Positions 11,246 through 61,100 of a stretch of 64,000 bases of DNA are shown here, piece after piece. Where the stretch lies: the NCBI GenBank assembly GCA_950097015.1, contig CATNEN010000011.1, positions 682,001 through 746,000 on the forward strand, given 5' to 3'. The stretch comes from Macrostomum hystrix. Taxonomy: Eukaryota > Animalia > Platyhelminthes. Under the pieces are notes generated by a model that was given only the letters and a program-made list of their open reading frames with translations, ran no database searches and had not been told where the DNA came from. How positions within the stretch are numbered: the stretch's first letter is position 1; every line of letters begins with the position of its first letter. The translations under genes were made by a program, and so were the position numbers.

Positions 11246-11986
11246 GTCTCGTTAGTTAAAACTCTAACTGTTGTATGGGACAATGCTTGGGGATAGAAGG
11301 GCCTCAAAACAGTGTATAAATTTCTGAGATGATTAGAGCAAGAGAAAGAAGATTACAGTTGCTGAGAGGATTAACTGACGACTTAAAGTTTGAACAAGGA
11401 GAGTTGGTGAGGCTGAGAGAATAGCTGACAGCCAATCACAGTGCAGCTAAGTAGACTCAAACTGGATCTACATTCAAAGGCTAAAATGCGATGTTAAAAG
11501 GTATCATTATTATTTTGCTGGCTAACACAGCTCGAGAACACTTTAAGCTCGATCGTGCTAAAAATCCGGTAGGTAAATATAAGAAATTTATAGATTTTTT
11601 AATGCAGTTTAATTAAATTTTGTTTCATTTTAACTCCAGACTCCTTGGAATGGAGAGACGGTATAAATTTGCACCCATAGTTGATGGATATTAAATTAGA
11701 TTATAAGTGTACTAATTAGCAATAATACTCTGTACGAGAGCCTGAGTCCATCCCACTTGGGAAATCCCAGCCAGTGCATGGGATTATGCTAATCCTAGCT
11801 AGTAATTCCTCCCATCCGAATCTGGGATTATCGAAATGTTGAGGCGAGGCGGAAAAAGCGCTTGACGAGGAATCGACAGCACAGGAAAAGTGGAAGTATT
11901 GAAGCCAGTATTGACACATTGTTTTAAGCTTCAGGCCCTCATTAATTATGCAATGCGCCTATAGCTGGTGCTAGCAAAATGGCAAG

Positions 11987-11992
11987 TATAAA
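11987..11992 (+). promoter_or_regulatory. Candidate TATA box of the propeptide gene
   Basis: TATAAA ~170 bp upstream of ATG 12161. A possible 5'-UTR intron (gtaaaa at ~12080 to ttacccacag at 12158) follows. The same arrangement is present in copy 2. Confidence 0.3.
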
Positions 11993-12160
11993 GCAGCCTT
12001 CGTATGCGGCAGCTGGTGTTGGCTCTTGTATCAGAAGCGTGTCGTGTCGCTATTTTGTATTTAACGACCAGAAAAAAACGTAAAATTGTTTTTTTAGACC
12101 TTAGGCAAGAGCGATTCCGAGCTTCCCAGTTTGCGATTTCGAAGAAAATTACCCACAGCA

Positions 12161-14107
12161 ATGAGCCGTCAGGTTGGTAAGTTTTACAGCTGGGCGATGG
12201 CAGCTTTCATCATCGCTTGCTGCCTCTCTGCCGTCCTGACAGCACCGAATCCTGCTGAAGACCAAGACTTTGACCCTAATGATTTTGATGATAAGCGAGG
12301 CTACGGCTACCTGAGGCAGGCCATGATGAAGAAGGGCTACGGCCACCTGAGGCAGGCCATGATGAAGAAGGGCTACGGCTACCTGAGGCAGGCCATGATG
12401 AAGAAGGGCTACGGCCACCTGAGGCAGGCCATGATGAAGAAGGGCTACGGCTACCTGAGGCAGGCCATGATGAAGAAGGGCTACGGCTACCTGAGGCAGG
12501 CCATGATGAAGAAGGGCTACGGCTACCTGAGGCAGGCCATGATGAAGAAGGGCTACGGCTACCTGAGGCAGGCCATGATGAAGAAGGGCTACGGCTACCT
12601 GAGGCAGGCCATGATTAAGAAGGGCTACGGCCACCTGAGGCAGGCCATGATGAAGAAGGGCTACGGCTACCTGAGGCAGGCCATGATGAAGAAGGGCTAC
12701 GGCTACCTGAGGCAGGCCATGATGAAGAAGGGCTACGGCCACCTGAGGCAGGCCATGATGAAGAAGGGCTACGGCTACCTGAGGCAGGCCATGATGAAGA
12801 AGGGCTACGGCTACCTGAGGCAGGCCATGATGAAGAAGGGCTACGGCTACCTGAGGCAGGCCATGATGAAGAAGGGCTACGGCTACCTGAGGCAGGCCAT
12901 GATGAAGAAGGGCTACGGCTACCTGAGGCAGGCCATGATAAAGAAGGGCTACGGCTACCTGAGGCAGGCCATGATGAAGAAGGGCTACGGCCACCTGAGG
13001 CAGGCCATGATGAAGAAGGGCTACGGCTACCTGAGGCAGGCCATGATGAAGAAGGGCTACGGCCACCTGAGGCAGGCCATGATAAAGAAGGGCTACGGCT
13101 ACCTGAGGCAGGCCATGATGAAGAAGGGCTACGGCCACCTGAGGCAGGCCATGATTAAGAAGGGCTACGGCTACCTGAGGCAGGCCATGATGAAGAAGGG
13201 CTACGGCTACCTGAGGCAGGCCATGATGAAGAAGGGCTACGGCTACCTGAGGCAGGCCATGATGAAGAAGGGCTACGGCCACCTGAGGCAGGCCATGATG
13301 AAGAAGGGCTACGGCCACCTGAGGCAGGCCATGATGAAGAAGGGCTACGGCTACCTGAGGCAGGCCATGATGAAGAAGGGCTACGGCTACCTGAGGCAGG
13401 CCATGATGAAGAAGGGCTACGGCTACCTGAGGCAGGCCATGATGAAGAAGGGCTACGGCTACCTGAGGCAGGCCATGATGAAGAAGGGCTACGGCCACCT
13501 GAGGCAGGCCATGATGAAGAAGGGCTACGGCTACCTGAGGCAGGCCATGATGAAGAAGGGCTACGGCCACCTGAGGCAGGCCATGATTAAGAAGGGCTAC
13601 GGCTACCTGAGGCAGGCCATGATGAAGAAGGGCTACGGCCACCTGAGGCAGGCCATGATGAAGAAGGGCTACGGCCACCTGAGGCAGGCCATGATGAAGA
13701 AGGGCTACGGCTACCTGAGGCAGGCCATGATGAAGAAGGGCTACGGCCACCTGAGGCAGGCCATGATGAAGAAGGGCTACGGCTACCTGAGGCAGGCCAT
13801 GATGAAGAAGGGCTACGGCTACCTGAGGCAGGCCATGATGAAGAAGGGCTACGGCCACCTGAGGCAGGCCATGATGAAGAAGGGCTACGGCTACCTGAGG
13901 CAGGCCATGATGAAGAAGGGCTACGGCCACCTGAGGCAGGCCATGATGAAGAAGGGCTACGGCTACCTGAGGCAGGCCATGATGAAGAAGGGCTACGGCC
14001 ACCTGAGGCAGGCCATGTTAGACAAACGCGGCTATGACTATCTGAAAGACGCCATGCTGCATAAAAGAGGCTACGGCTATCTTCACAAGGCCCTGAAGGA
14101 CATCTGA
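12161..14107 (+). CDS. Secreted multi-copy (neuro)peptide precursor, copy 1 (648 aa; 47 x GYG[Y/H]LRQAM[M/I]KK plus 3 divergent terminal peptides)
   Basis: Signal peptide MSRQVGKFYSWAMAAFIIACCLSAVLTA, acidic spacer ending DDKR, dibasic KK/KR after every peptide except the C-terminal one, stop TGA, downstream AATAAA at ~14238. This is classic prohormone architecture. The ORF track starts at an upstream TTG; the ATG is at 12161. Confidence 0.9.
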   Translation: MSRQVGKFYSWAMAAFIIACCLSAVLTAPNPAEDQDFDPNDFDDKRGYGYLRQAMMKKGYGHLRQAMMKKGYGYLRQAMMKKGYGHLRQAMMKKGYGYLRQAMMKKGYGYLRQAMMKKGYGYLRQAMMKKGYGYLRQAMMKKGYGYLRQAMIKKGYGHLRQAMMKKGYGYLRQAMMKKGYGYLRQAMMKKGYGHLRQAMMKKGYGYLRQAMMKKGYGYLRQAMMKKGYGYLRQAMMKKGYGYLRQAMMKKGYGYLRQAMIKKGYGYLRQAMMKKGYGHLRQAMMKKGYGYLRQAMMKKGYGHLRQAMIKKGYGYLRQAMMKKGYGHLRQAMIKKGYGYLRQAMMKKGYGYLRQAMMKKGYGYLRQAMMKKGYGHLRQAMMKKGYGHLRQAMMKKGYGYLRQAMMKKGYGYLRQAMMKKGYGYLRQAMMKKGYGYLRQAMMKKGYGHLRQAMMKKGYGYLRQAMMKKGYGHLRQAMIKKGYGYLRQAMMKKGYGHLRQAMMKKGYGHLRQAMMKKGYGYLRQAMMKKGYGHLRQAMMKKGYGYLRQAMMKKGYGYLRQAMMKKGYGHLRQAMMKKGYGYLRQAMMKKGYGHLRQAMMKKGYGYLRQAMMKKGYGHLRQAMLDKRGYDYLKDAMLHKRGYGYLHKALKDI

Positions 14108-14408
14108 CTGGTTAATTACGGCCAACAGCTGCGAAATGTTGTTTGAAATCTAACAAAACAGTTGTTCAAAACACTTTTTTATTTTATTAAAGGCGAATGA
14201 ATCTACATTCGTGAAGGCAAGAAGATTATGAAAGAATTAATAAATAAAATATACACCAAAATAACTACAATAGCAATTACTTTCACCCACTGCCTTTATC
14301 TTCTATACTAATTAATATTAGAAAGTTACACAGGTTAGAACTATGAAAAACGAGACAGTTTCTACACTGCATCTCCAAACTGATCAGAAAGTGAAGAGAC
14401 TACAGCAA

Positions 14409-14639: not shown

Positions 14640-17600
14640 TCGCATCAAGAATCGTAGCAAGAATCACATCTGGAATCGGGGAATCGTAGCTAGAAGAACA
14701 TCTGGAATCGTGGAATCGTAGCTAGAATCACATCTGGAATCGTAGCTAGAATCGCATTAGGAATCATAGCTAGAATCACATCTGGAATCGTAGCTAGAAT
14801 CGCATCAGGAATCGTAGCTAGAATCACATCTGCAATCGTAGCTAGAATCACATCTAGAATCGAAGCAAGAATTGCATCAGGAATCGTAGCTCGAATCAAA
14901 TCTGGAATCGTAGCAAGAATCGCATCTGGAATCGTAGCTAGAATCACATCTGGAATCGTAGCTAGAATCACATCTGGAATCGTAGCTAGAATCACATCTG
15001 GAATCGTAGCTAGAATCACATCTGGAATCGTAGCTAGAATCACATCTGAAGTCGTAGCTAGAATCACATCTGGAGTCGTAGCTAGAATCACATCTGGAAT
15101 CGTAGCAAGAATCGCATTAGGAATCATAGGTAGAATCACATCTGGAATCGTAGCTAGAATCACATCTGGAGTCGTAGCTAGAATCACATCTGGAATCGTA
15201 GCTAGAATCACATCTGGAATCGTAGCTAGAATCACATCTGGAATCGTAGCTAGAATCACATCTGGAATCGTAGCTAGAATCGCATCTGGAGTCGTAGCTA
15301 GAATCACATCTGGAATCGTAGCTAGAATCACATCTGGAATCGTAGCTAGAATCACATCTGGAGTCGTAGCTAGAATCACATCAGGAATCGTAGCTAGAAT
15401 CACATCTGGAATCGTAGCTAGAATCACATCTGGAGTCGTAGCTAGAATCACATCTGGAGTCGTAGCTAGAATCACATCAGGAATCGTAGCTAGAATCACA
15501 TCTGGAATCGCATCAGGAATCGTAGCAAGAATCACATCTGGAATCGTAGCTAGAATCACATCTGGAATCGTAGCTAGAATCACATCTGGAGTCGTAGCTA
15601 GAATCGCATCAGGAGTCGTAGCTAGAATCACATCTGGAGTCGTAGCTAGAATCACATCTGGAATCGTAGCTAGAATCACATCTGGAATCGTAGCTAGAAT
15701 CACATCTGGAGTCGTAGCTAGAATCACATCTGGAGTCGTAGCTAGAATCACATCAGGAATCGTAGCTAGAATCACATCTGGAATCGCATCAGGAATCGTA
15801 GCTAGAATCACATCTGGAGTCGTAGCTAGAATCACATCTGGAATCGTAGCTAGAATCACATCTGGAATCGTAGCTAGAATCACATCTGGAGTCGTAGCTA
15901 GAATCGCATCAGGAATCGTAGCTAGAATCACATCTGGAATCGTAGCTAGAATCACATCTGGAGTCGTAGCTAGAATCGCATCTGGAGTCGTAGCTAGAAT
16001 CACATCAGGAATCGTAGCTAGAATCACATCTGGAGTCGTAGCTAGAATCACATCAGGAATCGTAGCTAGAATCACATCTGGAATCGTAGCTAGAATCACA
16101 TCTGGAGTCGTAGCTAGAATCGCATCAGGAATCGTAGCTAGAATCACATCTGGAATCGCATCAGGAATCGTAGCTAGAATCACATCAGGAATCGTAGCTA
16201 GAATCACATCTGGAATCGCATCAGGAATCGTAGCTAGAATCACATCTGGAATCGTAGCTAGAATCACATCTGGAATCGTAGCTAGAATCACATCTGGAGT
16301 CGTAGCTAGAATCACATCTGGAGTCGTAGCTAGAATCACATCTGAAGTCGTAGCTAGAATCACATCTGGAATCGTAGCTAGAATCGCATCAGGAATCGTA
16401 GCTAGAATCACATCTGGAATCGCATCAGGAATCGTAGCTAGAATCACATCTGGAATCGTAGCTAGAATCACATCTGGAATCGTAGCTAGAATCACATCTG
16501 GAGTCGTAGCAAGAATCACATCTGGAGTCGTAGCTAGAATCACATCTGCAATCGTAGCTAGAATCACATCTAGAATCGAAGCAAGAATTGCATCAGGAAT
16601 CGTAGCTCAAATCAAATCTGGAATCGTAGCAAGAATCGCATCTGGAATCGTAGCTAGAATCACATCTGGAATCGTAGCTAGAATCACATCTGGAATCGTA
16701 GCTAGAATCACATCTGGAATCGTAGCTAGAATCACATCTGGAGTCGTAGCTAGAATCACATCTGGAGTCGTAGCTAGAATCACATCTGGAATCGTAGCAA
16801 GAATCGCATTAGGAATCATAGGTAGAATCACATCTGGAATCGTAGGTAGAATCACATCTGGAATCGTAGCTAGAATCACATCTGGAGTCGTAGCTAGAAT
16901 CACATCTGGAATCGTAGCTAGAATCACATCTGGAATCGTAGCTAGAATCACATCTGGAATCGTAGCTAGAATCACATCTGGAATCGTAGCTAGAATCACA
17001 TCTGGAGTCGTAGCTAGAATCACATCTGGAGTCGTAGCTAGAATCACATCTGGAGTCGTAGCTAGAATCACATCAGGAATCGTAGCTAGAATCACATCTG
17101 GAATCGTAGCTAGAATCACATCTGGAGTCGTAGCTAGAATCACATCTGGAGTCGTAGCTAGAATCACATCTGGAATCGTAGCAAGAATCGCATTAGGAAT
17201 CATAGGTAGAATCACATCTGGAATCGTAGGTAGAATCACATCTGGAATCGTAGCTAGAATCACATCTGGAGTCGTAGCTAGAATCACATCTAGAATCGTA
17301 GCTAGAATCACATCTGGAATCGTAGCTAGAATCACATCTGGAATCGTAGCTAGAATCACATCTGGAATCGTAGCTAGAATCACATCTGGAGTCGTAGCTA
17401 GAATCACATCTGGAGTCGTAGCTAGAATCACATCTGGAGTCGTAGCTAGAATCACATCAGGAATCGTAGCTAGAATCACATCTGGAATCGCATCAGGAAT
17501 CGTAGCTAGAATCACATCTGGAATCGTAGCTAGAATCACATCTGGAATCGTAGCTAGAATCACATCTGGAGTCGTAGCTAGAATCACATCTGGAATCGTA

Positions 17601-18602
17601 GCTAGAATCACATCAGGAATCGTAGCTAGAATCACATCTGGAATCGCATCAGGAATCGTAGCTAGAATCACATCTGGAATCGTAGCTAGAATCACATCTG
17701 GAATCGTAGCTAGAATCACATCTGGAATCGTAGCTAGAATCACATCTGGAGTCGTAGCTAGAATCACATCTGGAGTCGTAGCTAGAATCACATCTGGAGT
17801 CGTAGCTAGAATCGCATCAGGAATCGTAGCTAGAATCACATCTGGAATCGCATCAGGAATCGTAGCTAGAATCACATCTGGAATCGTAGCTAGAATCACA
17901 TCTGGAATCGTAGCTAGAATCACATCTGGAGTCGTAGCTAGAATCACATCTGCAATCGTAGCTAGAATCACATCTAGAATCGAAGCAAGAATTGCATCAG
18001 GAATCGTAGCTCGAATCAAATCTGGAATCGTAGCAAGAATCGCATCAGGAATCGTAGCTAGAATCACATCTGGAATCGTAGCTAGAATCACATCTGGAGT
18101 CGTAGCTAGAATCACATCTGGAATCGTAGCTAGAATCACATCTGGAGTCGTAGCTAGAATCACATCTGGAATCGTAGCTAGAATCACATCTGGAATCGTA
18201 GCTAGAATCACATCTGGAGTCGTAGCTAGAATCACATCTGGAATCGTAGCTAGAATCACATCTGGAATCGTAGCTAGAATCACATCTGGAATCGTAGCTA
18301 GAATCACATCTGGAATCGTAGCTAGAATCACATCTGGAATCGTAGCTAGAATCACATCAGGAATCGTAGCTAGAATCACATCTGGAATCGTAGCTAGAAT
18401 CACATCTGGAATCGTAGCTAGAATCACATCTGGAGTCGTAGCTAGAATCACATCTGGAATCGTAGCTAGAATCACATCTGGAATCGTAGCTAGAATCACA
18501 TCTGGAGTCGTAGCTAGAATCACATCTGGAGTCGTAGCTAGAATCGCATCAGGAATCGTAGCTAGAATCACATCTGGAATCGCATCAGGAATCGTAGCTA
18601 GA
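14640..18602. repeat. 24-bp minisatellite (gaatcgtagctagaatcacatctg)n, ~4 kb
   Basis: Two 12-bp half-units; source of the ILATIPDV ORFs. Confidence 0.95.
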
Positions 18603-23596: not shown

Positions 23597-25831
23597 ATGA
23601 GCCGTCAGGTTGGTAAGTTTTACAGCTGGGCGATGGCAGCTTTCATCATCGCTTGCTGCCTCTCTGCCGTCCTGACAGCACCGAATCCTGCTGAAGACCA
23701 AGACTTTGACCCTAATGATTTTGATGATAAGCGAGGCTACGGCTACCTGAGGCAGGCCATGATGAAGAAGGGCTACGGCTACCTGAGGCAGGCCATGATG
23801 AAGAAGGGCTACGGCTACCTGAGGCAGGCCATGATGAAGAAGGGCTACGGCTACCTGAGGCAGGCCATGATGAAGAAGGGCTACGGCTACCTGAGGCAGG
23901 CCATGATGAAGAAGGGCTACGGCTACCTGAGGCAGGCCATGATGAAGAAGGGCTACGGCTACCTGAGGCAGGCCATGATGAAGAAGGGCTACGGCCACCT
24001 GAGGCAGGCCATGATGAAGAAGGGCTACGGCTACCTGAGGCAGGCCATGATGAAGAAGGGCTACGGCTACCTGAGGCAGGCCATGATGAAGAAGGGCTAC
24101 GGCTACCTGAGGCAGGCCATGATGAAGAAGGGCTACGGCTACCTGAGGCAGGCCATGATGAAGAAGGGCTACGGCTACCTGAGGCAGGCCATGATGAAGA
24201 AGGGCTACGGCTACCTGAGGCAGGCCATGATGAAGAAGGGCTACGGCTACCTGAGGCAGGCCATGATGAAGAAGGGCTACGGCTACCTGAGGCAGGCCAT
24301 GATGAAGAAGGGCTACGGCCACCTGAGGCAGGCCATGATGAAGAAGGGCTACGGCTACCTGAGGCAGGCCATGATGAAGAAGGGCTACGGCTACCTGAGG
24401 CAGGCCATGATGAAGAAGGGCTACGGCTACCTGAGGCAGGCCATGATGAAGAAGGGCTACGGCCACCTGAGGCAGGCCATGATGAAGAAGGGCTACGGCC
24501 ACCTGAGGCAGGCCATGATGAAGAAGGGCTACGGCCACCTGAGGCAGGCCATGATGAAGAAGGGCTACGGCTACCTGAGGCAGGCCATGATGAAGAAGGG
24601 CTACGGCCACCTGAGGCAGGCCATGATGAAGAAGGGCTACGGCTACCTGAGGCAGGCCATGATGAAGAAGGGCTACGGCTACCTGAGGCAGGCCATGATG
24701 AAGAAGGGCTACGGCTACCTGAGGCAGGCCATGATGAAGAAGGGCTACGGCCACCTGAGGCAGGCCATGATGAAGAAGGGCTACGGCCACCTGAGGCAGG
24801 CCATGATGAAGAAGGGCTACGGCCACCTGAGGCAGGCCATGATGAAGAAGGGCTACGGCTACCTGAGGCAGGCCATGATTAAGAAGGGCTACGGCTACCT
24901 GAGGCAGGCCATGATGAAGAAGGGCTACGGCTACCTGAGGCAGGCCATGATGAAGAAGGGCTACGGCTACCTGAGGCAGGCCATGATGAAGAAGGGCTAC
25001 GGCCACCTGAGGCAGGCCATGATGAAGAAGGGCTACGGCTACCTGAGGCAGGCCATGATGAAGAAGGGCTACGGCTACCTGAGGCAGGCCATGATGAAGA
25101 AGGGCTACGGCTACCTGAGGCAGGCCATGATGAAGAAGGGCTACGGCTACCTGAGGCAGGCCATGATGAAGAAGGGCTACGGCCACCTGAGGCAGGCCAT
25201 GATGAAGAAGGGCTACGGCTACCTGAGGCAGGCCATGATGAAGAAGGGCTACGGCTACCTGAGGCAGGCCATGATGAAGAAGGGCTACGGCTACCTGAGG
25301 CAGGCCATGATGAAGAAGGGCTACGGCCACCTGAGGCAGGCCATGATGAAGAAGGGCTACGGCTACCTGAGGCAGGCCATGATGAAGAAGGGCTACGGCC
25401 ACCTGAGGCAGGCCATGATGAAGAAGGGCTACGGCCACCTGAGGCAGGCCATGATGAAGAAGGGCTACGGCCACCTGAGGCAGGCCATGATGAAGAAGGG
25501 CTACGGCCACCTGAGGCAGGCCATGATTAAGAAGGGCTACGGCTACCTGAGGCAGGCCATGATGAAGAAGGGCTACGGCCACCTGAGGCAGGCCATGATG
25601 AAGAAGGGCTACGGCTACCTGAGGCAGGCCATGATGAAGAAGGGCTACGGCCACCTGAGGCAGGCCATGATGAAGAAGGGCTACGGCTACCTGAGGCAGG
25701 CCATGATGAAGAAGGGCTACGGCCACCTGAGGCAGGCCATGCTAGACAAACGCGGCTATGACTATCTGAAAGACGCCATGCTGCATAAAAGAGGCTACGG
25801 CTATCTTCACAAGGCCCTGAAGGACATCTGA
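23597..25831 (+). CDS. Secreted multi-copy (neuro)peptide precursor, copy 2 (744 aa; 55 repeats plus 3 terminal peptides)
   Basis: Identical prepro region and C-terminus to copy 1; 288 bp (8 units) longer. Confidence 0.9.
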   Translation: MSRQVGKFYSWAMAAFIIACCLSAVLTAPNPAEDQDFDPNDFDDKRGYGYLRQAMMKKGYGYLRQAMMKKGYGYLRQAMMKKGYGYLRQAMMKKGYGYLRQAMMKKGYGYLRQAMMKKGYGYLRQAMMKKGYGHLRQAMMKKGYGYLRQAMMKKGYGYLRQAMMKKGYGYLRQAMMKKGYGYLRQAMMKKGYGYLRQAMMKKGYGYLRQAMMKKGYGYLRQAMMKKGYGYLRQAMMKKGYGHLRQAMMKKGYGYLRQAMMKKGYGYLRQAMMKKGYGYLRQAMMKKGYGHLRQAMMKKGYGHLRQAMMKKGYGHLRQAMMKKGYGYLRQAMMKKGYGHLRQAMMKKGYGYLRQAMMKKGYGYLRQAMMKKGYGYLRQAMMKKGYGHLRQAMMKKGYGHLRQAMMKKGYGHLRQAMMKKGYGYLRQAMIKKGYGYLRQAMMKKGYGYLRQAMMKKGYGYLRQAMMKKGYGHLRQAMMKKGYGYLRQAMMKKGYGYLRQAMMKKGYGYLRQAMMKKGYGYLRQAMMKKGYGHLRQAMMKKGYGYLRQAMMKKGYGYLRQAMMKKGYGYLRQAMMKKGYGHLRQAMMKKGYGYLRQAMMKKGYGHLRQAMMKKGYGHLRQAMMKKGYGHLRQAMMKKGYGHLRQAMIKKGYGYLRQAMMKKGYGHLRQAMMKKGYGYLRQAMMKKGYGHLRQAMMKKGYGYLRQAMMKKGYGHLRQAMLDKRGYDYLKDAMLHKRGYGYLHKALKDI

Positions 25832-26359: not shown

Positions 26360-29113
26360 GGAATCGCATCAAGAATCGTAGCAAGAATCACATCTCGAAT
26401 CGGGGAATCGTAGCTAGAAGAACATCTGGAATCGTGGAATCGTAGCTAGAATCACATCTGGAATCGTAGCTAGAATCGCATCAGGAATCGTAGCTAGAAT
26501 CACATCTGCAATCGTAGCTAGAATCACATCTGGAATCGTAGCTAGAATCACATCTGGAGTCGTAGCTAGAATCACATCTGGAATCGTAGCTCGAGTCAAA
26601 TCTGGAATCGTAGCAAGAATCGCATTAGGAATCATAGCTAGAATCACATCTGCAATCGTAGCTAGAATCACATCTGCAATCGTAGCTAGAATCACATCTG
26701 GAATCGTAGCTAGAATCACATCTGGAGTCGTAGCTAGAATCACATCTGGAATCGTAGCTCGAGTCAAATCTGGAATCGTAGCAAGAATCGCATTAGGAAT
26801 CATAGCTAGAATCTCATCTGGAATCGTAGCTAGAATCACATCTGGAGTCGTAGCTAGAATCACATCTGGAATCGTAGCTCGAATCAAATCTGGAATCGTA
26901 GCTCGAGTCAAATCTGGAATCGTAGCAAGAATCGCATTAGGAATCATAGCTAGAATCACATCTGGAATCATAGCCAGAATCACATCTGGAATCGTAGCTA
27001 GAATCACATCTGGAATCGTAGCTAGAATCACATCTGCAGGAGTCGTAGCTAGAATCACATCTGGAGTCGTAGCTAGAATCACATCTGGAATAGTAGCAAG
27101 AATCGCATTAGGAATCATAGCTAGAATCACATCTGGAATCGTAGCTAGAATCGCATCAGGAATCGTAGCATGAATCGCATCAGGAATCGTAGCTCGAGTC
27201 AAATCTGGAATCGTAGCAAGAATCGCATTAGGAATCATAGCTAGAATCACATCTGGAATCGTAGCTAGAATCACATCTGGAATCGTAGCTCGAATCAAAT
27301 CTGGAATCGTAGCTCGAGTCAAATCTGGAATCGTAGCAAGAATCGCATTAGGAATCATAGCTAGAATCACATCTGGAATCATAGCTAGAATCACATCTGG
27401 AATCGTAGCTAGAATCACATCTGGAATCGTAGCTAGAATCACATCTGCAGGAGTCGTAGCTAGAATCACATCTGGAGTCGTAGCTAGAATCACATCTGGA
27501 ATAGTAGCAAGAATCGCATTAGGAATCATAGCTAGAATCACATCTGGAATCGTAGCTAGAATCGCATCAGGAATCGTAGCTAGAATCACATCTGCAATCG
27601 TAGCTAGAATCACATCTGGAATCGAAGCAAGAATTGCATCAGGAATCGTAGCTCGAATCAAATCTGGAATCGTAGCAAGAATCGCATCTGGAATCGTAGC
27701 TAGAATCACATCTGGAATCGTAGCTAGAATCACATCTGGAATCGTAGCTAGAATCACATCTGGAATCGTAGCTAGAATCACATCTGGAATCGTAGCTAGA
27801 ATCACATCTGGAATCGTAGCTAGAATCACATCTGGAATCGTAGCAAGAATCACATCTGGAATCGTAGCTAGAATCACATCTGCAATCGTAGCTAGAATCA
27901 CATCTGGAATCGTAGCAAGAATTGCATCAGGAATCGTAGCTAGAATCACATCTGCAATCGTAGCTCGAATCAAATCTGGAATCGTAGCAAGAATCGCATC
28001 TGGAATCGTAGCAAAAATCACATCTGGAATCGTAGCTAGAATCACATCTGCAATCGTAGCTCGAATCAAATCTGGAATCGTAGCAAGAATCGCATCTGGA
28101 ATCGTAGCTAGAATCACATCTGGAATCGTAGCTAGAATCACATCTGGAATCGTAGCTAGAATCACATCTGGAATCGTAGCTAGAATCACATCTGGAATCG
28201 TAGCTAGAATCACATCTGGAGTCGTAGCTACAATCACATCTGGAATCGTAGCTAGAATCACATCTGGAATCGTAGCTAGAATCACATCTGCAGGAGTCGT
28301 AGCTAGAATCACATCTGGAGTCGTAGCTAGAATCACATCTGGAATAGTAGCAAGAATCGCATTAGGAATCATAGCTAGAATCACATCTGGAATCGTAGCT
28401 AGAATCACATCTGGAGTCATAGCTAGAATCACATCTGGAATCGTAGCTAGAATCACATCTGGAATCGTAGCTAGAATCACATCTGGAATCGTAGCAAGAA
28501 TCACATCTGGAATCATAGCCAGAATCACATCTGGAGTCGTAGCTAGAATCACATCTGGAATCGTAGCAAGAATTGCATCAGGAATCGTAGCTCGAATCAA
28601 ATCTGGAATCGTAGCAAGAATCGCATCAGGAATCGTAGCTAGAATCACATCTGGAATCGTAGCTAGAATCAAATCTGGAATCGTAGCTAGAATCACATCT
28701 GCAATCGTAGCTAGAATCACATCTGGAATCGTAGCAAGAATTGCATCAGGAATCGTAGCTCGAATCAAATCTGGAATCGTAGCAAGAATCGCATCAGGAA
28801 TCGTAGCTAGAATCACATCTGGAATCGTAGCTAGAATCAAATCTGGAATCGTAGCTAGAATCACATCTGGAATCGTAGCTAGAATCACATCTGGAATCGT
28901 AGCTAGAATCACATCTGGAGTCGTAGCTACAATCACATCTGGAATCGTAGCTAGAATCACATCTGGAATCGTAGCTAGAATCACATCTGCAGGAGTCGTA
29001 GCTAGAATCACATCTGGAATCGTAGCTAGAATCACATCTGGAGTCGTAGCTAGAATCGCATCAGGAATCGTAGCTAGAATCACATCTGGAATCGCATCAG
29101 GAATCGTAGCTAG
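26360..29113. repeat. 24-bp minisatellite, copy 2 (~2.75 kb)
   Basis: Same unit as 14640-18602 with a different variant spectrum. Confidence 0.95.
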
Positions 29114-51700: not shown

Positions 51701-53320
51701 TAGCCTTAAATTGAAATGAATTATTTTTTTGCGAAGGCGAATCACGAATTTTTTAACCTTAGAAACTCTTTAAATTTCAGAAATTATTGGAGCTCGTTCC
51801 TCGGTGGTTAAAGCATCAAACTTCGACTGAGACTCTGAGAGGTCGGGAGTTCGAATCTGAGCCCAGGCAGAACGATTTCCAGTATCAGCTGGGGTAGAAA
51901 CTTAGATGTGGCGTCCATTCCAGTCCACACACAGAAGAGCTGTACACAGACGTTGTGTTTTAGCTGCGGCTGTTTCACTGCCTGTACACCTATCCTAAAG
52001 GGGCCATGTAATGTCTTCTTTATCTATCATTAGCTAAAACTCTAGGCTCTTGTCATAGTATTCGTTTTTTGTGTATTTTATATAAGAATCCGCAAATTCA
52101 TTGGCCAAAAATGTTTTAATAAGTTTAAACACTTTGTCTGCTTTAATCTTTAGATTTCTTTGTTTTAACTTATTATTTAACTCACCAAATGTGCACAAAA
52201 ATATAATAATTGCAGGACATCGATTGGTGACACGAGGAGACAATTCTGCCCATTCCGCTGACTCCTGAGCACACGCCAAACACGCATAGATACCGTATGC
52301 AGGCATATGCTCACACAGTTGTGCACATCTGCCCTGAATTTTAATCGTCAGGCAGTGTACACTTTTAATTTGCCCTTAAGGGCGTAAATTGCACGACAAG
52401 CTCCCAAGCCTTCTCTCCGCGGCTGCGTCTCAAATGAATGTGCCTCGCCGCGGAATCGAGCTCAGGTACCTTGGTGCGAGAAGCAAACGTGTTAGACTGC
52501 TCTACCACTCACCCCTTCCTAATTGTGCAATAAAATTTTATTAATTGATCAGTAGCGGTGCCAAAGTGTGCACCGATAATGTTAAACTAATCACATCAAC
52601 GTGCTAAAACGGCCTTAAATCATCGGGTAGAGCCCACACTAAACCATCTCATTCCCAGAGCGCATCACCCCGATGCTGGCTTCGGATGCATCGTCGGCAA
52701 GCAGCCGCTGTCCCGAGCGTTGCAGTCGAATTGAATATCGAGCTGCCGTGTCGCAAACCGACTGGCTGGTCAGCCGTTGGCAGATGCTGCGCATGGTGCA
52801 ACAGCACGCCCTGTGGAGTCGACTCTATCAGAGCCTAGGCCCAGAACTGGACGCCAACAAGGAGGGCGCGAATGCCAGCGCCACTCTAAGTCGACTGAGA
52901 AGCTACTTCAGCAGGCGCGACATCGACAATCTAACAGACCTGTCAGCTGACGATGACACGCTTGGCAGGTGGGCACAGCTAGCCAGCGAGCTGCAAGGCC
53001 ACGGTGGAGGAGGCGACAGTGGCGATCATCAGTTCGTCTTCTTGCGCGTTCGACGCGCTACAGGAGACGCCACGGAGACGCGCAGGGAGACTCTAACACT
53101 AAATTTCTACAGCTTAGTCTGTCAGATTGGCGGTGTGTGCAGTCTAACCCTTGGCCTCAGCTGTGCATTCATTGTAGAGCTGTTTGAATGGGTCTACATC
53201 AGCCTAACTGGCACAAGGCGCGAACTAACAGCGCAAGAGGCACCACAGGCAGTGGCTAATGAAGTGGCCATCACAGCGGCTAAACTTGATTCAACGACTG
53301 ACGCACCGGCAGCTGTGTGA
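48743..53320 (+). CDS. DEG/ENaC (amiloride-sensitive sodium channel family) subunit, ~660 aa. Exons 48743-49155, 49237-49395, 49687-49870, 50645-50935, 51015-51294, 52659-53320
   Basis: In-frame exon chain (1989 nt). TM1 VWLVFVLTMLAFMVAAVTSL, post-M1 YLRYET...FPSTTLC, HPDYFNCFTLN, VHEAGQYP, Cys-rich thumb (CI...YSHEKC...C.CLP, C..RC..IEY), TM2 LVCQIGGVCSLTLGLSCAFIVE. Boundaries of exons 3 and 4 are less certain. Confidence 0.88.
49885..50150 (-). mobile_element. SINE family 2 copy (antisense), DEG/ENaC intron 3
   Basis: Reverse complement of the family 2 head and tail. Confidence 0.75.
50386..50572 (+). mobile_element. SINE family 1 copy with internal deletion, DEG/ENaC intron 3
   Basis: Head ggggttgtagcctagtgg joined directly to the 3' half of the element. 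Confidence 0.75.
51328..51693 (+). mobile_element. tRNA-derived SINE family 2, full-length copy
   Basis: A box tggcggagcggtt, B box agttcgattcc, (att)n tail. 9-bp direct repeat aactgccta at 51315-51323 and 51694-51702 (candidate TSD). Confidence 0.85.
51789..52010 (+). mobile_element. Diverged SINE family 1-related copy
   Basis: A/B boxes (ctcggtggttaa, gggagttcgaatct) and cagctgggg...gtggcgtcc...cagtcc body. Confidence 0.6.
52198..52515 (-). mobile_element. SINE family 2 copy (antisense), DEG/ENaC intron 5
   Basis: aataataattgcagga tail and ccgcggaatcgagctcagg head in reverse orientation. Confidence 0.75.
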
Positions 53321-55172: not shown

Positions 55173-58100
55173 TCAATACGGCGGCTTTCCAAACGATGGC
55201 CAACTACTGGCGTATTGGCCAAAGCTTTGACTAAATTGAGGGAGCTGCTGACTTTGCTGCTGTTGCTGTTGTCTCTGAAGCAGAAGCTGCTGCTGCTGCT
55301 GCTGATGCTGCTGCACCTGATTAAAGTTCAACTGCGGCTGACTTTGGTAGGCATAAGATGGATAGCTGGGCGCTGACTGCTGCTGCTGGCTGGACTGAGG
55401 ATAGACAGTGACGGAGGCGGCTGCCGCAGCGGCCAAAGCGGCCGAGGCAGACATCTGAATGCCTAAACTGGCAGCCGCTGAGTAATGCTGATTTCTATCC
55501 GCCTTATGCTGCTTCTGCAACTGTTGATGCTGAGGCTGCGGCGGCGGTGATGGAATCAGTGGCTGAAGCTTCTGCTGCTGCTGAGGAATAGACAACCTGA
55601 GTGACTGTTGAGAAGTCGATAAAGAAGACTGAGAAGATTGGTATTGGGTTCTATTAGTTGACGTCTGATTAGACAACTGCTGCTGATGATCTGCGCTAGT
55701 CAATGAGAATGGTGATAATTGCTGCGGATTAACTGCAAAAGCTGCTTTCTGCTGCTGCTGCTGCTGCTGCAAAGACAAGGACGATTGCGGCGACTGTTGT
55801 TGAGATGCAAAGGCTTGCGGTAGCAGTTGCTGAGACCGGGGAGACTGATGCTGAGATGAAGGCTGATAATAAGGCTTCGAGACTTGTTGAGTAGACAGCT
55901 TCGGTGGTGAAGATGTCTGTTGCGCTGATTGCTGAGGCCTGGAAGCTTGCTGAGGTGGCAGTTGCTGAGGCTTATTAGCTTGTTGTTGTGGTGGCAGTTG
56001 CTGAGGCTTATTAGCTTGTTGCTGAGGTGGCAATTGCTGGGGCTTATTAGCTTGTTGCTGAGGTGGCAGATGCTGAGGCCTATTAGCTTGTTGCTGAGGT
56101 GGCAGTTGCTGAGGCTTATTAGCTTGCTGGGGTGGCAGTTGTTGTGGTGACAGATGCCGAGGCGGCAGTTGCTGAGGCTTATTAGCTTGCTGCTGAGGTG
56201 GCAGATGCTGAGGCTTATTAGCTTGCTGAGGTGGCAGTTGCTGAGGCTTATTAGCTTGCTGCTGAGGTGGCAGATGCTGAGGCTTATTAGCTTGTTGCTG
56301 AGGTGGCAGATGCTGAGGCCTATTAGCTTGTTGCTGAGGTGGCAGTTGCTGAGGCTTATTAGCTTGCTGGGGTGGCAGTTGTTGTGGTGACAGATGCCGA
56401 GGCGGCAGTTGCTGAGGCTTATTAGCTTGCTGCTGAGGTGGCAGATGCTGAGGCTTATTAGCTTGCTGAGGTGGCAGTTGCTGAGGCTTATTAGCTTGCT
56501 GCTGAGGTGGCAGTTGCTGAGGCTTATTAGCTTGCTGCTGAGGTGGCAGATGCTGAGGCTTATTAGCTTGCTGAGGTGGCAGATGCTGAGGCTTATTAGC
56601 TTGCTGAGGTGGCAGTTGCTGAGGCTTATTAGCTTGCTGCTGAGGTGGCAGCTGCTGAGGCTTATTAGCTTGCTGCTGAGGTGGCAGCTGCTGAGGCTTA
56701 TTAGCTTGTTGCTGAGGTGGCAGTTGCTGAGGCCTATTAGCTTGCTGCTGAGGTGGCAGTTGCTGAGGCCTATTAGCTTGTTGCTGAGGTGGCAGTTGCT
56801 GAGGCCTATTAGCTTGCTGCTGAGGTGGCAGTTGCTGAGGCCTATTAGCTTGTTGCTGAGGTGGCAGTTGCTGAGGCTTATTAGCTTGCTGCTGAGGTGG
56901 CAGCTGCTGAGGCTTATTAGCTTGCTGCTGAGGTGGCAGCTGCTGAGGCTTATTAGCTTGTTGCTGAGGTGGCAGTTGCTGAGGCCTATTAGCTTGCTGC
57001 TGAGGTGGCAGCTGCTGAGGCTTATTAGCTTGCTGCTGAGGTGGCAGCTGCTGAGGCTTATTAGCTTGCTGCTGAGGTGGCAGCTGCTGAGGCTTATTAG
57101 CTTGCTGAGGTGGCATCTGCTGAGGCTTATTAGCTTGCTGCTGAGGTGGCAGTTGCTGAGGCTTATTAGCTTGCTGCTGAGGTGGCAGTTGCTGAGGCCT
57201 ATTAGCTTGCTGAGGTGGCAGCTGCTGAGGCTTATTTGCTTGTTGCTGAGGTGGCAATTGCTGCATTTTCGAGACTTGTGACAGCTGATGCGGAGACATT
57301 GTAGTTGGTGATGTTTGATGTAAATCTGGGTGAGCATTAGTACTAGCCTGCTGCTGCTGCTGCTGCTGTGGCTGCTGAGAGCTGAAAATCCCGCAATAGC
57401 GCGTGTGTCATAGTGTCATGATAAATAAATTGAGAAAAAAGCAATTCTTATTGTCTTGTAAATATTTGTTATTAGTATTAGTAATATGTCGAGTGTATTA
57501 TGTGCAATGCCCTACTAGGGTCAACATTGTTCCCATCTAATAAACTAAACTGTTACAAATGCGCCAGGTGCTAAGTAATTAGCTCGGCTAGGATTAAAAA
57601 CAGAGCAAAATAAACTAGCTGTTTATTTGTTGTCACCGGTTCACAGCACGCTTTGAAATAAAAACAACTGATCAAACTGATTTTCCTGCGGCACCTACAG
57701 GAACAATAACAGGGCACTAAAACTGCAGTTCTGGTCTATTCTCTCTCACTTGAAGTTGGACTTGTCCCGTGGCTCCGCCTTGCAGGCACCCTGCTGCTGA
57801 GTGGACCCCTGCTGCTGAGTGGACCCCTGCTGCTGCTGCTGCTGATGGAGGAGTCTCGGTTTCGGATTGATGATGCACATCAGCTTCCTAAATAGAAATG
57901 ATTCGAGTATTTGAAGTCATGGAAGGAACAAGAACAATCTCTGGATTACTGTGGCGAATCCCAATTACAATTCAGGGATATTGAGATTCCGAAAGAGAAC
58001 AAGAGGATACCGAAATAAGACAATGGGATTCCGAAATGGACAAATGGGATTCCGAAATTGGATAAGGGATTCCGAAAGAGGACAAGGGGATTCGGAAAGA

Positions 58101-61100
58101 AGACATTCGGATTCCGAAAGAGGACAAGGGGATTCGGAAAGAAGACATTCGGATTCCGAAAGAGGACAAGGGGATACCAAAAGAGGACAATGGGATTCCG
58201 AAATGGACAAATGGGATTCCGAAATTGGACAAGGGATTCCGAAAGAGGACAAGGGGATACCGAAAGAGGACAAGGAGATTCTAAAAGAGGATAAGGGGAT
58301 TCCGAAAGAGGACAAGGTGATTCTAAAAGAGGATAAGGAGATTCCAAAAGAGAACAAGGAGATTCCAAAAGTGGACAAGGTGATTCTAAAAGAGGATAAG
58401 GGGATTCCGAAAGAGGACAAGGGGATTTTGAAAGAGGAAAAGCGGATTTTAAAAGAAAACAAGAGGATTCCGAAAAGCACATGTAATACAGGATATTCCA
58501 AGAGAAATATGAAAAAACGGATGAATACACCCACGTGCAACTCATCCAATCTGCAGGCCAAAGCGGTAGCAGTTGTTTCTCGGCGAACTCTCTCAGAGCC
58601 TCCTCCCGATCCGAGTCCTTCGATCGATGATTGGCCAATACGCCGAGCTTAGCCTCTACAATGGATTTTAGCAGTCGCTTGGACTCCGAGCACCACACAA
58701 AATTGCGTCGCGGCTGCGGTCCGGGCGGCCTCGCCGAAGGCGCGGGTTTGCCTTCAGCCGACGCGGCGGCTGCCGCGGCGATATCAGCTCGACGGGCAGC
58801 TTCTAGACGCTCGCGATGCAATCGGACATCGTCGGCGTGCTTGACCATCTGCTGCGGCATGGACAATTCAACAGCCCGACGCAGCTGGTTGAGCAAAGGC
58901 GGCAGCTCGGTCTCAAATCGTTTTTCTCGCAGTGCCATCACTTTGCGGCGAAGGCAAACTTTTGAGGCCAGGCCGAAATGGCTGGTCAGGTGGTTGTAGA
59001 CTGCGTTGCCGCGATGCGCCGGCAGAGACGAGCTGCGAATGTCGGGAGAAAATAACTAGCTGCTTTAATTAGTAAAAAACATGGAGACGTCTGTGATTGG
59101 TTGAGCTAAATTTTAGTCCACTACCATGGCTTCATATCACTGTCGTCGGTGATTGGCCTGGCTAAGCCTCAATCCGATACCAATGGCTTCTAATCTGTCG
59201 TCGGTGATTGGCTGGGCTAAGCCTCAGTCCGATACCAACGGCTTCTAATCTGTCGTCGGTAATTGGCTGGGCTAAGCTTCAGTCCACTATTATAAATGCT
59301 TATCACTTTCGTCGGTGAAGGTGATTGGCTGGACTCAGTCTCAGTCTCAGTCTATTACCATGGTTTTGTATTCCTGTCGTCAGTGATTGGCTGGGCTAAA
59401 ACTCAGTGGAATACAAGGGCTAGGCAAACTTGCCGACTCACCGAACATAATCGTCCAACTCCAGCCAATCCGCGGCGAGCTCTTTGCTAGCAAACAGCTG
59501 CGATGGTTTCAGTCCACCAGGACCGGAGCTTTCTATGCAACGAGCTCCGGCTAGTTTTAATCGGTCAACAATTTCCACTATTCGCTGGGGCAGACTGACT
59601 GGCAGGCAGGCTGCCTCGCCAACAGCGGCAGGTTTTGCTACTGCCAGATTCTGTTGCTGCTGCTTAGGCGGCGTGGGCGGCTGCTGTTTTTTCGACTCTT
59701 CTTCTAGAAGCACGGATTTAAAAACGGAATCAAGCGACGGCTTGGGCGGTGGGCCATTTTTAATTGGAGTTTCAGCGGCCAGTACAGAATCAATAATTGA
59801 ATCAATCGATCGAACTGTGGGCTGCTGCTGCTGGCCGGTTGGATTTTGCGAAGCTACTGAAAGAGCCGGCTTCCCAGACGGCGCCACGGAGCTGACTAGA
59901 GCCGCGAACGACGGAGCAGCCGCAGCGGAAGCGGCTGAGCTAGTTTTCTGCCGTTGCTGAGCCTTGGCCAGAGTCTTAACCGCCTTTGACACTAAATCTC
60001 TGCGCCCAGACGATAACTTGGATTTGGATTTTTTACCGCTATTAAATAGAGAGGGCCGGTCGGGCAGCAGTTCCTGCTTCCGACGCTTCTTGGGCACTTC
60101 CGACGAGCCATTGTCATCGCCGGACTCGTCCGAGGTGTTCTCCGAAGCCGACGAAGAGCCGGACGATCCTGACGCAGCCGTCGAAGAATTCTCCTCATTA
60201 GAGCCGGAAGAAGTTGAGGACTCAACTCGATGTCGCTTTTTAGTTGCGGCGGCGGCAGCAGAAAGGGTACCGGGCGCAGATTCAGAACTTGGTCCTTCGA
60301 TCACAATGTCCGAAGCGTTATCCGTGGTCACCTGCCAGATAGAATAGGGGGTCAAATTTATGACCTTCAGTTATAACTTGATGGAAAACACGAAAGAATG
60401 AGTCTTAAAATTTCGAATTTTGGATCTAAAACCTTAGAATTAAGACATCAAAGGGAAGGGAGGCGGTAAGGGGAAAGGGAGCAAAACCTAGACATTTGAG
60501 GAAAAAACATATAAGCGTAGTATAGCGAACTCTAATAATGAGAAATTTTAAACAAAAAACTATTGGATGGCCTACCTCCAAGTCGCCTTGATTGATGTAG
60601 AATCCGCCTAATTTAGGCTTCTGATTCGGCAGGACCATCAGCTCTTTGGCGTCGCCATCGTCAATGAAAGAATCTTCGGAGTCGTAGCCTTCGCCTGGAT
60701 CCATGTAGTCCTGTACGCAGATTCTACGCTGGCGACAACCGCCTTTACTAACGTAAACCTGAGGACCGTATCTGTGGTGATAGCAATGGGAACGAGTGAT
60801 TTAACTAAGCTGAACATAATTTATAATGCATTATCTGGCTAGCTTTTCTCACCTAGCTTCCAGACTCTGAGCAATGGAGCGCAGTCGTTCATTTTCGGCG
60901 CCATCAATAGCAGCGAATGGATCTGCACTATTCTTTGCAGTGCCGGCATCACCATTGCTGCCGGGTGCTTTTGCGGAGATTGCACCAGCTTCACCAATTA
61001 GATCTAAGAAGGAGTACTCATAGCGCCTATGCTCATCGTCACTATGAGCAGCATCATCTGGCCATAGATTAATCTCTACCCTGTAGGCATAATTAGACTT

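Follow-up and report, generated by a model that had tools for sequence, protein, structure and literature searches.

A probable secreted precursor built of about 50 decapeptide units

The stretch analyzed here is a 64,000-nt window of Macrostomum hystrix DNA (contig CATNEN010000011.1, positions 682,001–746,000, forward strand), and the coordinates below are those of the window. An open reading frame (ORF) at 12161–14107 on the plus strand translates into a secreted-type protein composed of ~50 near-identical decapeptide units that are parted by Lys-Lys (KK). Judged by its sequence, this gene, referred to below as copy 1, is an orphan precursor of the dibasic-delimited, multi-copy secreted type, extreme in copy number and constituting no new category. 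We favour, with a probability of roughly 0.55, the reading that it encodes a lineage-specific multi-copy propeptide, which would be cut at dibasic sites into non-amidated decapeptides. What the analysis demonstrates is the anatomy of the sequence, the duplication of the gene, its apparent transcription and its lack of relatives. The parts of copy 1 are the following.

12161–12241 (+): signal-peptide-like N-terminus of ~27 residues, predicted by rule from the translation and its hydrophobic core
12242–12298 (+): acidic spacer PNPAEDQDFDPNDFDD, which ends in the dibasic site Lys-Arg (KR; 12293–12298), from the translation
12299–13990 (+): array of 47 units, 36 nt per unit, GYG[Y/H]LRQAM[M/I] followed by KK, from Tandem Repeats Finder (TRF) and unit-by-unit reading
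13991–14107 (+): three divergent end units, GYGHLRQAMLD-KR, GYDYLKDAMLH-KR and GYGYLHKALKDI, then the stop codon, from the translation

The first ATG downstream of an in-frame stop lies at 12161. The N-terminus that follows, MSRQVGKFYSWAMAAFIIACCLSAVLTA in translation, has a basic n-region (R3 and K7), a hydrophobic core at residues ~10–26 (maximum Kyte–Doolittle mean of 2.9 over nine residues) and small residues preceding Pro28. The 47 canonical 12-residue units are contiguous: 29 read GYGYLRQAMM, 13 read GYGHLRQAMM and five end in Ile. For this array, TRF gives a period of 36 and 47.8 copies, with 97% matches and 0% indels. A dibasic pair stands at every unit boundary (49 of 49 in copy 1 and 57 of 57 in the second copy described below). 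The amidation donor is absent, no unit having a terminal Gly, and RF occurs in none of the units. The translation reproduces, residue for residue, the anatomy given in the original prediction (signal, acidic spacer, KR, 47 KK units and three divergent ends), and the peptides can still be called non-amidated, as they were there. The mature protein has a computed isoelectric point (pI) of 10.5 and contains 16% Lys, 16% Gly, 15% Met, 13% Tyr and 3% His. AlphaFold2, given residues 1–226 and no alignment, returned a single long helix of low confidence (predicted local distance difference test score, 62.7; predicted template-modelling score, 0.19), which is uninformative; a predicted helix in this low-confidence model spans residues 4–27.

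This layout is that of a textbook prohormone: the head resembles a signal, the acidic spacer closes with KR and dibasic pairs recur periodically. Cleavage, the identity of the peptides and their signalling role are what we infer from it. After removal of the signal peptide, subtilisin-like proprotein convertases in the secretory pathway would cut after each KR or KK (the spacer KR, the unit KK and the tail KR), and a carboxypeptidase would then trim off the basic residues. Each molecule would yield ~50–58 non-amidated peptides. The main products would be GYGYLRQAMM (average mass 1189.4) and GYGHLRQAMM (1163.4) in a ratio of ~2:1, with a small number of ...AMI variants and the three tail peptides, each different, as minor products. 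The peptides would act as extracellular signals. At least six loci of the genome score above the cut-off for the P domain of proprotein convertases (PF01483), and the pc2 gene of Macrostomum lignano is neural as well as essential (PMC4490696). In planarians, expression of prohormone genes is seen in neurons and also in reproductive glands (PMC2953531), so the tissue cannot be guessed from the sequence. Neurons are a possible source of the peptides, and an exocrine or reproductive gland a slightly less probable one, each holding a minority share of the total.

A recent tandem duplication of the gene

The window holds a second gene copy, overlooked in the original prediction; its head and tail are those of copy 1, and it has 55 canonical units.

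23597–25831 (+): gene copy 2, with the 46-residue head of copy 1, 55 units (23735–25714), three end units (25715–25828) and the stop codon
23423 and 25963 (+): TATAAA and AATAAA of copy 2, respectively, given as motif positions
8507–31605 (unstranded): two tandem copies of a segmental block comprising a 34-nt satellite, the gene, a 24-nt satellite, the 24-nt TACTATTAC satellite and a 21-nt satellite

Copies 1 and 2 are 100% identical over 400 nt across the promoter-proximal region, the 5′ untranslated region (UTR) and the head. The head and the tail are intact in both, with one synonymous difference and zero replacements. The unique flanks of the two blocks are 97.7% (upstream), 99.9% (downstream) and 99.3% identical; going by these sequences, the gene pair is the product of a recent tandem duplication of ~11 kb. 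Despite the near-identical flanks, the two arrays have different numbers of units (47 versus 55) and arrange their Tyr and His units differently, so turnover of the array outpaces point mutation. The high copy number would most likely stem from unequal crossing-over of a single unit in the recent past; the genome is exceptionally prone to the expansion of minisatellites.

A search of the whole genome revealed no third copy. A 42%-identical match on another contig (G000:C1:6729018–6732598) is an unrelated satellite, which repeats a 36-nt unit at least 84 times and reads ...EGYGRLSQLRIC... with periodic TGA stops, and all the other own-genome matches examined, apart from the two copies, are unrelated minisatellites. 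In a crude scan of the 6 kb lying 5′ of the window, no ORF carried more than one G-dibasic motif.

Parts of the gene that escaped homogenization

One 36-nt sequence dominates the units, and only two nucleotide positions vary: T/C exchanges Tyr and His, and G/T/A exchanges Met and Ile. The G+C content is 57% in the coding array against 34–44% in the background, and at third codon positions (GC3) it reaches 0.99 in the array, compared with 0.50 in the head and 0.49 in a neighbouring long exon. The strongest internal argument for cleavage would come from the parts that escaped this homogenization, namely the KR boundaries and the end units. KR is present at all three non-homogenized boundaries (one before the first unit and two in the tail), where its Arg codons are CGA, CGC and AGA. 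Since KR is kept with three different Arg codons while the adjacent residues diverge, constraint on the cleavage site is suggested. The end units retain the core G-Y-x-[YH]-L-x-x-A-[ML] via synonymous changes (TAT for TAC and CTT for CTG). At the level of sequence, this pattern suggests that the peptide core and the putative cleavage site are both constrained. The earlier proposal that the divergent end units are the older ones is likewise supported: their core is kept through synonymous changes and they carry KR, as found before unit 1, whereas the amplified unit is homogenized.

Apparent transcription and flanking signals

Three public runs from two studies contain the sequence, and their contigs match it at 100%; the contigs were placed on 11500–12440 only, and the runs are guessed, not known, to be RNA. 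The contigs start at 11992, 12073 and 12123, further upstream with the deeper run, and all extend to 12328 with no differences, entering the array without joints or loose ends. None of the three runs covers 11500–11991. In one of them (X3), the repeat-unit contig is covered ~41 times as deeply as the unique 5′ contig. With the runs taken as RNA, this pattern fits an intronless messenger RNA (mRNA) that begins near 11992 and carries tens of units, and it is unlike genomic DNA. The contigs give no expression level and cannot separate copies 1 and 2. The original prediction staked itself on the existence of a transcript, and the answer is a partial one, in that contigs with a defined 5′ boundary match the gene in runs of presumed RNA. 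The flanking signals of copy 1 are the following.

11987–11992 (+): TATAAA box 5′ of copy 1, given as a motif position; the longest matching contig begins at 11992
11992–12160 (+): putative 5′ UTR of copy 1; the contigs are collinear with the genome, without an intron or a visible spliced leader
14239–14248 (+): two overlapping AATAAA signals, predicted from motif position, ~135 nt past the stop

The putative 5′ UTR contains a single ATG, at 12004, which opens an out-of-frame upstream ORF (uORF) of 58 codons (12004–12180) that overlaps the main start. This ATG is located 12 nt inside the longest contig, yet 5′ of the start site predicted from the TATAAA at 11987; the presence of the uORF in the mRNA depends on the true transcription start.

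The coding arrays among the surrounding minisatellites

The unit of copy 1 is open in four of the six frames and open satellite frames are widespread in the genome; thus, an open frame alone is no evidence of a gene. As a local control, we compared 26 array-spanning open frames from 21 minisatellite arrays of the window. An upstream ATG, a signal-like core and a dibasic pair per 12 residues occur together only in the two GYG arrays among these 26 frames.

Positions 1–36000 of the window hold ~20 distinct minisatellite arrays with periods of 19–36 nt, many of them open in two to four frames, and their frames look like ORFs of 100–890 residues (26414–29083 and 16607–18571, for example). The 24-nt satellite TGGAATCGTAGCTAGAATCACATC occupies 14711–18582 (161 copies) and 26435–29094 (110 copies), ~600 nt 3′ of each gene copy, and its minus strand has an open frame reading ...DVILATIP.... 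Another contig (G000:C39:13398305–13402153) holds a very similar array (DAILSTIP), indicating a dispersed satellite family that yields long false ORFs. Real coding arrays are concealed among hundreds of open-frame satellites in this genome, which calls for caution.

Search for relatives

Neither the whole protein nor its 82-residue head matched anything in a word-index search of 5.8 billion proteins. An exhaustive HMMER search of 1.84 billion representatives gave 139 matches, of which we inspected the top-scoring ones and every GYG-rich or dibasic-G-rich one. The inspected matches are periodic low-complexity look-alikes, except for two or three that are multi-copy peptide precursors, alike in layout and of unproven common ancestry; no glue or eggshell protein was recognized among the 139. 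The Pfam matches (Rho_RNA_bind, DUF6157 and DUF268) are spurious and driven by the repeat. A full-text search of the searchable literature found the peptide strings in no paper. As far as these sequence searches extend, there are no detectable relatives, in line with the earlier description of the peptide as lineage-specific and outside the named families.

Three of the HMMER matches are of interest for their layout. P0062, in a cluster with XP_060589703.1 of the clam Ruditapes philippinarum, has the units GLDRLSSGFV-KK and GFDRISSGFV-KK and appears pedal-peptide-like by motif. It matches our protein with E = 5.3e-6 in the library search, amid many unrelated periodic proteins, and with E = 5e-5 in a pairwise comparison, where the in-register alignment is driven by the KKG...L periodicity. 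P0080, from the sea snail Gigantopelta, has GYGFMGSRG-KK units and is tachykinin-like by motif, and P0044 has GFSFSLP-type units flanked by KR. The KK boundaries of the clam and sea-snail precursors indicate that KK is normal in lophotrochozoan multi-copy precursors, which softens the objection that it is a weak site. In a language-model feature search of the ESM Atlas, the nearest clusters were three arthropod multi-copy neuropeptide precursors (0.77–0.82), a lead only; with the repeat region alone, the head having been removed, the search gave no usable match and the neuropeptide lead was gone.

Other candidates were set aside. When the clam precursor was used as a query for a canonical gene of the pedal peptide/orcokinin type (PP/OK) in the genome, satellites swamped the matches and no usable candidate emerged. 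The M. lignano shell/cement-gland transcript RNA815_13, considered as a counterpart, encodes an unrelated vWA/collagen-like protein. The likenesses of GYGYLRQ to opioid YGGFLRR and of GYL...M to the molluscan small cardioactive peptides are superficial and were dropped.

Comparison with known multi-copy precursors

By its sequence, the layout is closest to that of PP/OK precursors, which likewise contain many tandem non-amidated peptides (~10–16 residues, with a class range of ~10–20) with dibasic flanks. The gene is not filed as a member of this family because the C-terminal G-F is lacking and the similarity is insignificant beyond the periodicity. The clam precursor P0062 has the 12-residue period in common, with a Gly-initial decapeptide followed by KK, and the shared pattern is G-aromatic/hydrophobic-[D/G]-x-[L/I]-x-x-[A/G]-hydrophobic-hydrophobic-K-K. 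However, the N-terminal [F/L/Y]-D-x-[I/L/V] of PP/OK peptides is found here only in the divergent unit GYDYL, and all 102 amplified units have GYGYL or GYGHL, with G where the family has D. At the C-terminus, the SGF or AGF hallmark is replaced by AMM, AMI, AMLD, AMLH and ALKDI. The copy number is also several times higher than in PP/OK precursors. The GYDYL start of the older unit is comparable to the YDPL of starfish SMP, FGKGGAYDPLSAGFTD, which is present in 12+7 copies (PMC5656890).

Extreme tandem amplification of one short peptide, to a comparable copy number, is shared with the coral and other cnidarian preprohormones of the Antho-RFamide type, which have up to 38–50 copies (PMC7523074). 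These differ in being amidated (a Gly donor precedes the basic site), in their often non-dibasic N-terminal processing and in their unrelated sequence and phylum. To call the present gene extremely amplified, as was done originally, is fair at 50 and 58 peptides per precursor, but this is not unprecedented, as corals reach ~50 copies (PMC7523074). The same genome encodes an FDPLIM precursor (G000:C26:1323497–1324114) with 26 KR-flanked units and the end FDSSKDD. By motif, it is alike in its minisatellite-like array, in its short non-amidated peptide ending in hydrophobic-Met and in an [F/Y]-D-x-L start that recalls GYDYL; it differs in its eight-residue units, its KR flanks and the synonymous variation among its units (TTC/TTT and CCG/CCT), which the GYG array lacks. 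Finally, the string G-Y-[I/L]-R is shared with flatworm GYIRFamide, although length and copy number differ, and membership among the FMRFamide-like peptides was rejected for want of a C-terminal RF and of a Gly amidation donor.

Weighing the alternatives

Several points weigh against a cleaved propeptide. KK is generally the least efficiently cut dibasic site, and the amplified units all use KK, whereas the head, the tail and the FDPLIM precursor use KR. The K/G/M/Y/H composition and the pI of 10.5 would also suit a polycationic Tyr/Lys material. Variation among the amplified units is non-synonymous only (Y/H and M/I), with zero synonymous variants, and the array itself is without sign of purifying selection on the peptide. 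In addition, the runs are only presumed to be RNA.

Some of these points suit a different product, namely an uncleaved or end-trimmed secreted polymer, polycationic and rich in Tyr, Lys, Gly and His, which might serve as an eggshell precursor, an egg cement or another tanned or coacervating secretion. Its Tyr would be converted to the quinone of 3,4-dihydroxyphenylalanine (DOPA) and cross-linked to Lys and His, as in mussel mfp-1, sandcastle-worm Pc-1/Pc-2 and trematode eggshell proteins. Mussel mfp-1 is built of AKPSYPPTYK repeats, and the repeat of Pc-1 is given here as VGGYGYGGKK, which is similar to GYGY...KK, although a full-text search for the Pc-1/Pc-2 repeats found nothing. These materials, which include the trematode eggshell proteins p14 and p48, are likewise secreted and highly basic, with a short Tyr/Lys/Gly(/His) tandem unit and a Tyr-Gly context, and the present protein, with a single short unit repeated ~50 times, a pI of 10.5 and its Lys, Gly, Tyr and His contents, recalls both the DOPA glue proteins and the trematode eggshell precursors (PMC9999432, PMC2758302). 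In trematode eggshell proteins, Gly often flanks Tyr and DOPA-quinones bind Lys (PMC2758302); here, Gly follows the first Tyr of each unit, and the Y-to-H swap trades one cross-linkable residue for another. Macrostomum possesses shell and cement glands as well as eggshell granules in its oocytes (PMC4490696). The use of KK, a poor convertase site, in the amplified units also suits a protein that stays whole, and the FDPLIM precursor has KR throughout together with synonymous variation. This explanation is the main rival of the cleaved propeptide and deserves more weight than the original prediction gave it. We nevertheless consider it the less likely of the two, because a polymer would have no use for an acidic pro-region that closes with KR, nor for KR at the boundaries of the divergent units, and the DOPA materials lack dibasic-delimited units behind a pro-region. 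Known DOPA proteins are poor in Met and bulky hydrophobic residues, and the LRQAMM half-unit (Met, at 15% of the protein, with Leu, Arg and Gln) is unlike them. No homology to a known DOPA or quinone-tanned protein, and no material-type protein at all, was recognized among the 139 HMMER matches, and the Atlas feature search led to neuropeptide precursors rather than to materials.

Mutation pressure offers a further explanation, in which a small peptide precursor of three or four units was overrun by neutral minisatellite expansion; the gene would be transcribed, its amplified part would have no selected function or the gene would be decaying, and copy number would reflect mutation and not dose. 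The ~20 minisatellite arrays in the first 36 kb of the window, the multi-frame-open arrays throughout the genome and the near-identical unit DNA with its lack of synonymous variation fit such an expansion, as do the 47 and 55 units in different Y/H order between flanks that are 98–99.9% identical, which speak for very recent turnover; the GC3 of 0.99 could stem from biased gene conversion in a recombining array. We hold it to be improbable, however, as the frame is intact across 102 units with no indel or stop, the head and tail are unbroken and the same in both copies but for the one synonymous change, and the contig depth suggests that tens of units are transcribed per 5′ end. It is still more improbable that the locus is non-coding, a satellite array open by chance and transcribed as noise. 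The four open frames of the unit and the satellites around the locus would allow this, but the ATG, signal-like core, acidic spacer and dibasic periodicity are unique among the 26 open array frames, and the TATA box, the poly(A) signal, the defined contig 5′ boundary and the divergent in-frame end units argue for a gene.

Significance

If the cleaved peptides are real, they add an undescribed non-amidated peptide to flatworm signalling, in a tractable genus with RNA interference and in situ methods, at a copy number on par with the animal record. Peptide dose would then be tied to satellite-type turnover, as copies whose flanks are 98–99.9% identical are already eight units apart. Tentatively, the gene may represent a new macrostomid peptide family, GYG[Y/H]LRQAMM, made at very high dose (102 core copies in two tandem genes, matching the highest known copy numbers), perhaps as a very derived PP/OK-type ligand or as an exocrine reproductive peptide, with its copy number still changing via minisatellite instability; such a family would show, in a live case, how satellite dynamics can set the dose of a peptide. 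Should the protein remain uncut instead, the result would be a Tyr/Lys material of the glue or eggshell type on a prohormone-like scaffold, with relevance to bioadhesion and to the egg biology of free-living flatworms.

Neighbouring reading frames

Further along the window, ~27 kb downstream of gene copy 2, an ORF fragment at 52673–53320 (+) shows a match to the C-terminal portion of amiloride-sensitive sodium channels (PF00858, E = 4.6e-6) and probably belongs, as an exon, to a DEG/ENaC channel gene. In other invertebrates, some channels of this family are gated by peptides. A 708-residue ORF at 55173–57299 (−) has an MgtE_N match (E = 8e-15) and overlaps a 36-nt tandem repeat (55948–57263, 37.6 copies); the match may be an artefact of the repeat; alternatively, this could be a genuine exon that contains repeats. 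Lastly, the ORF at 57946–58941 (−) matches the conserved middle domain of ubinuclein (PF14075, E = 3e-18) and is, by this match, probably an exon of a ubinuclein/HIRA-complex gene.

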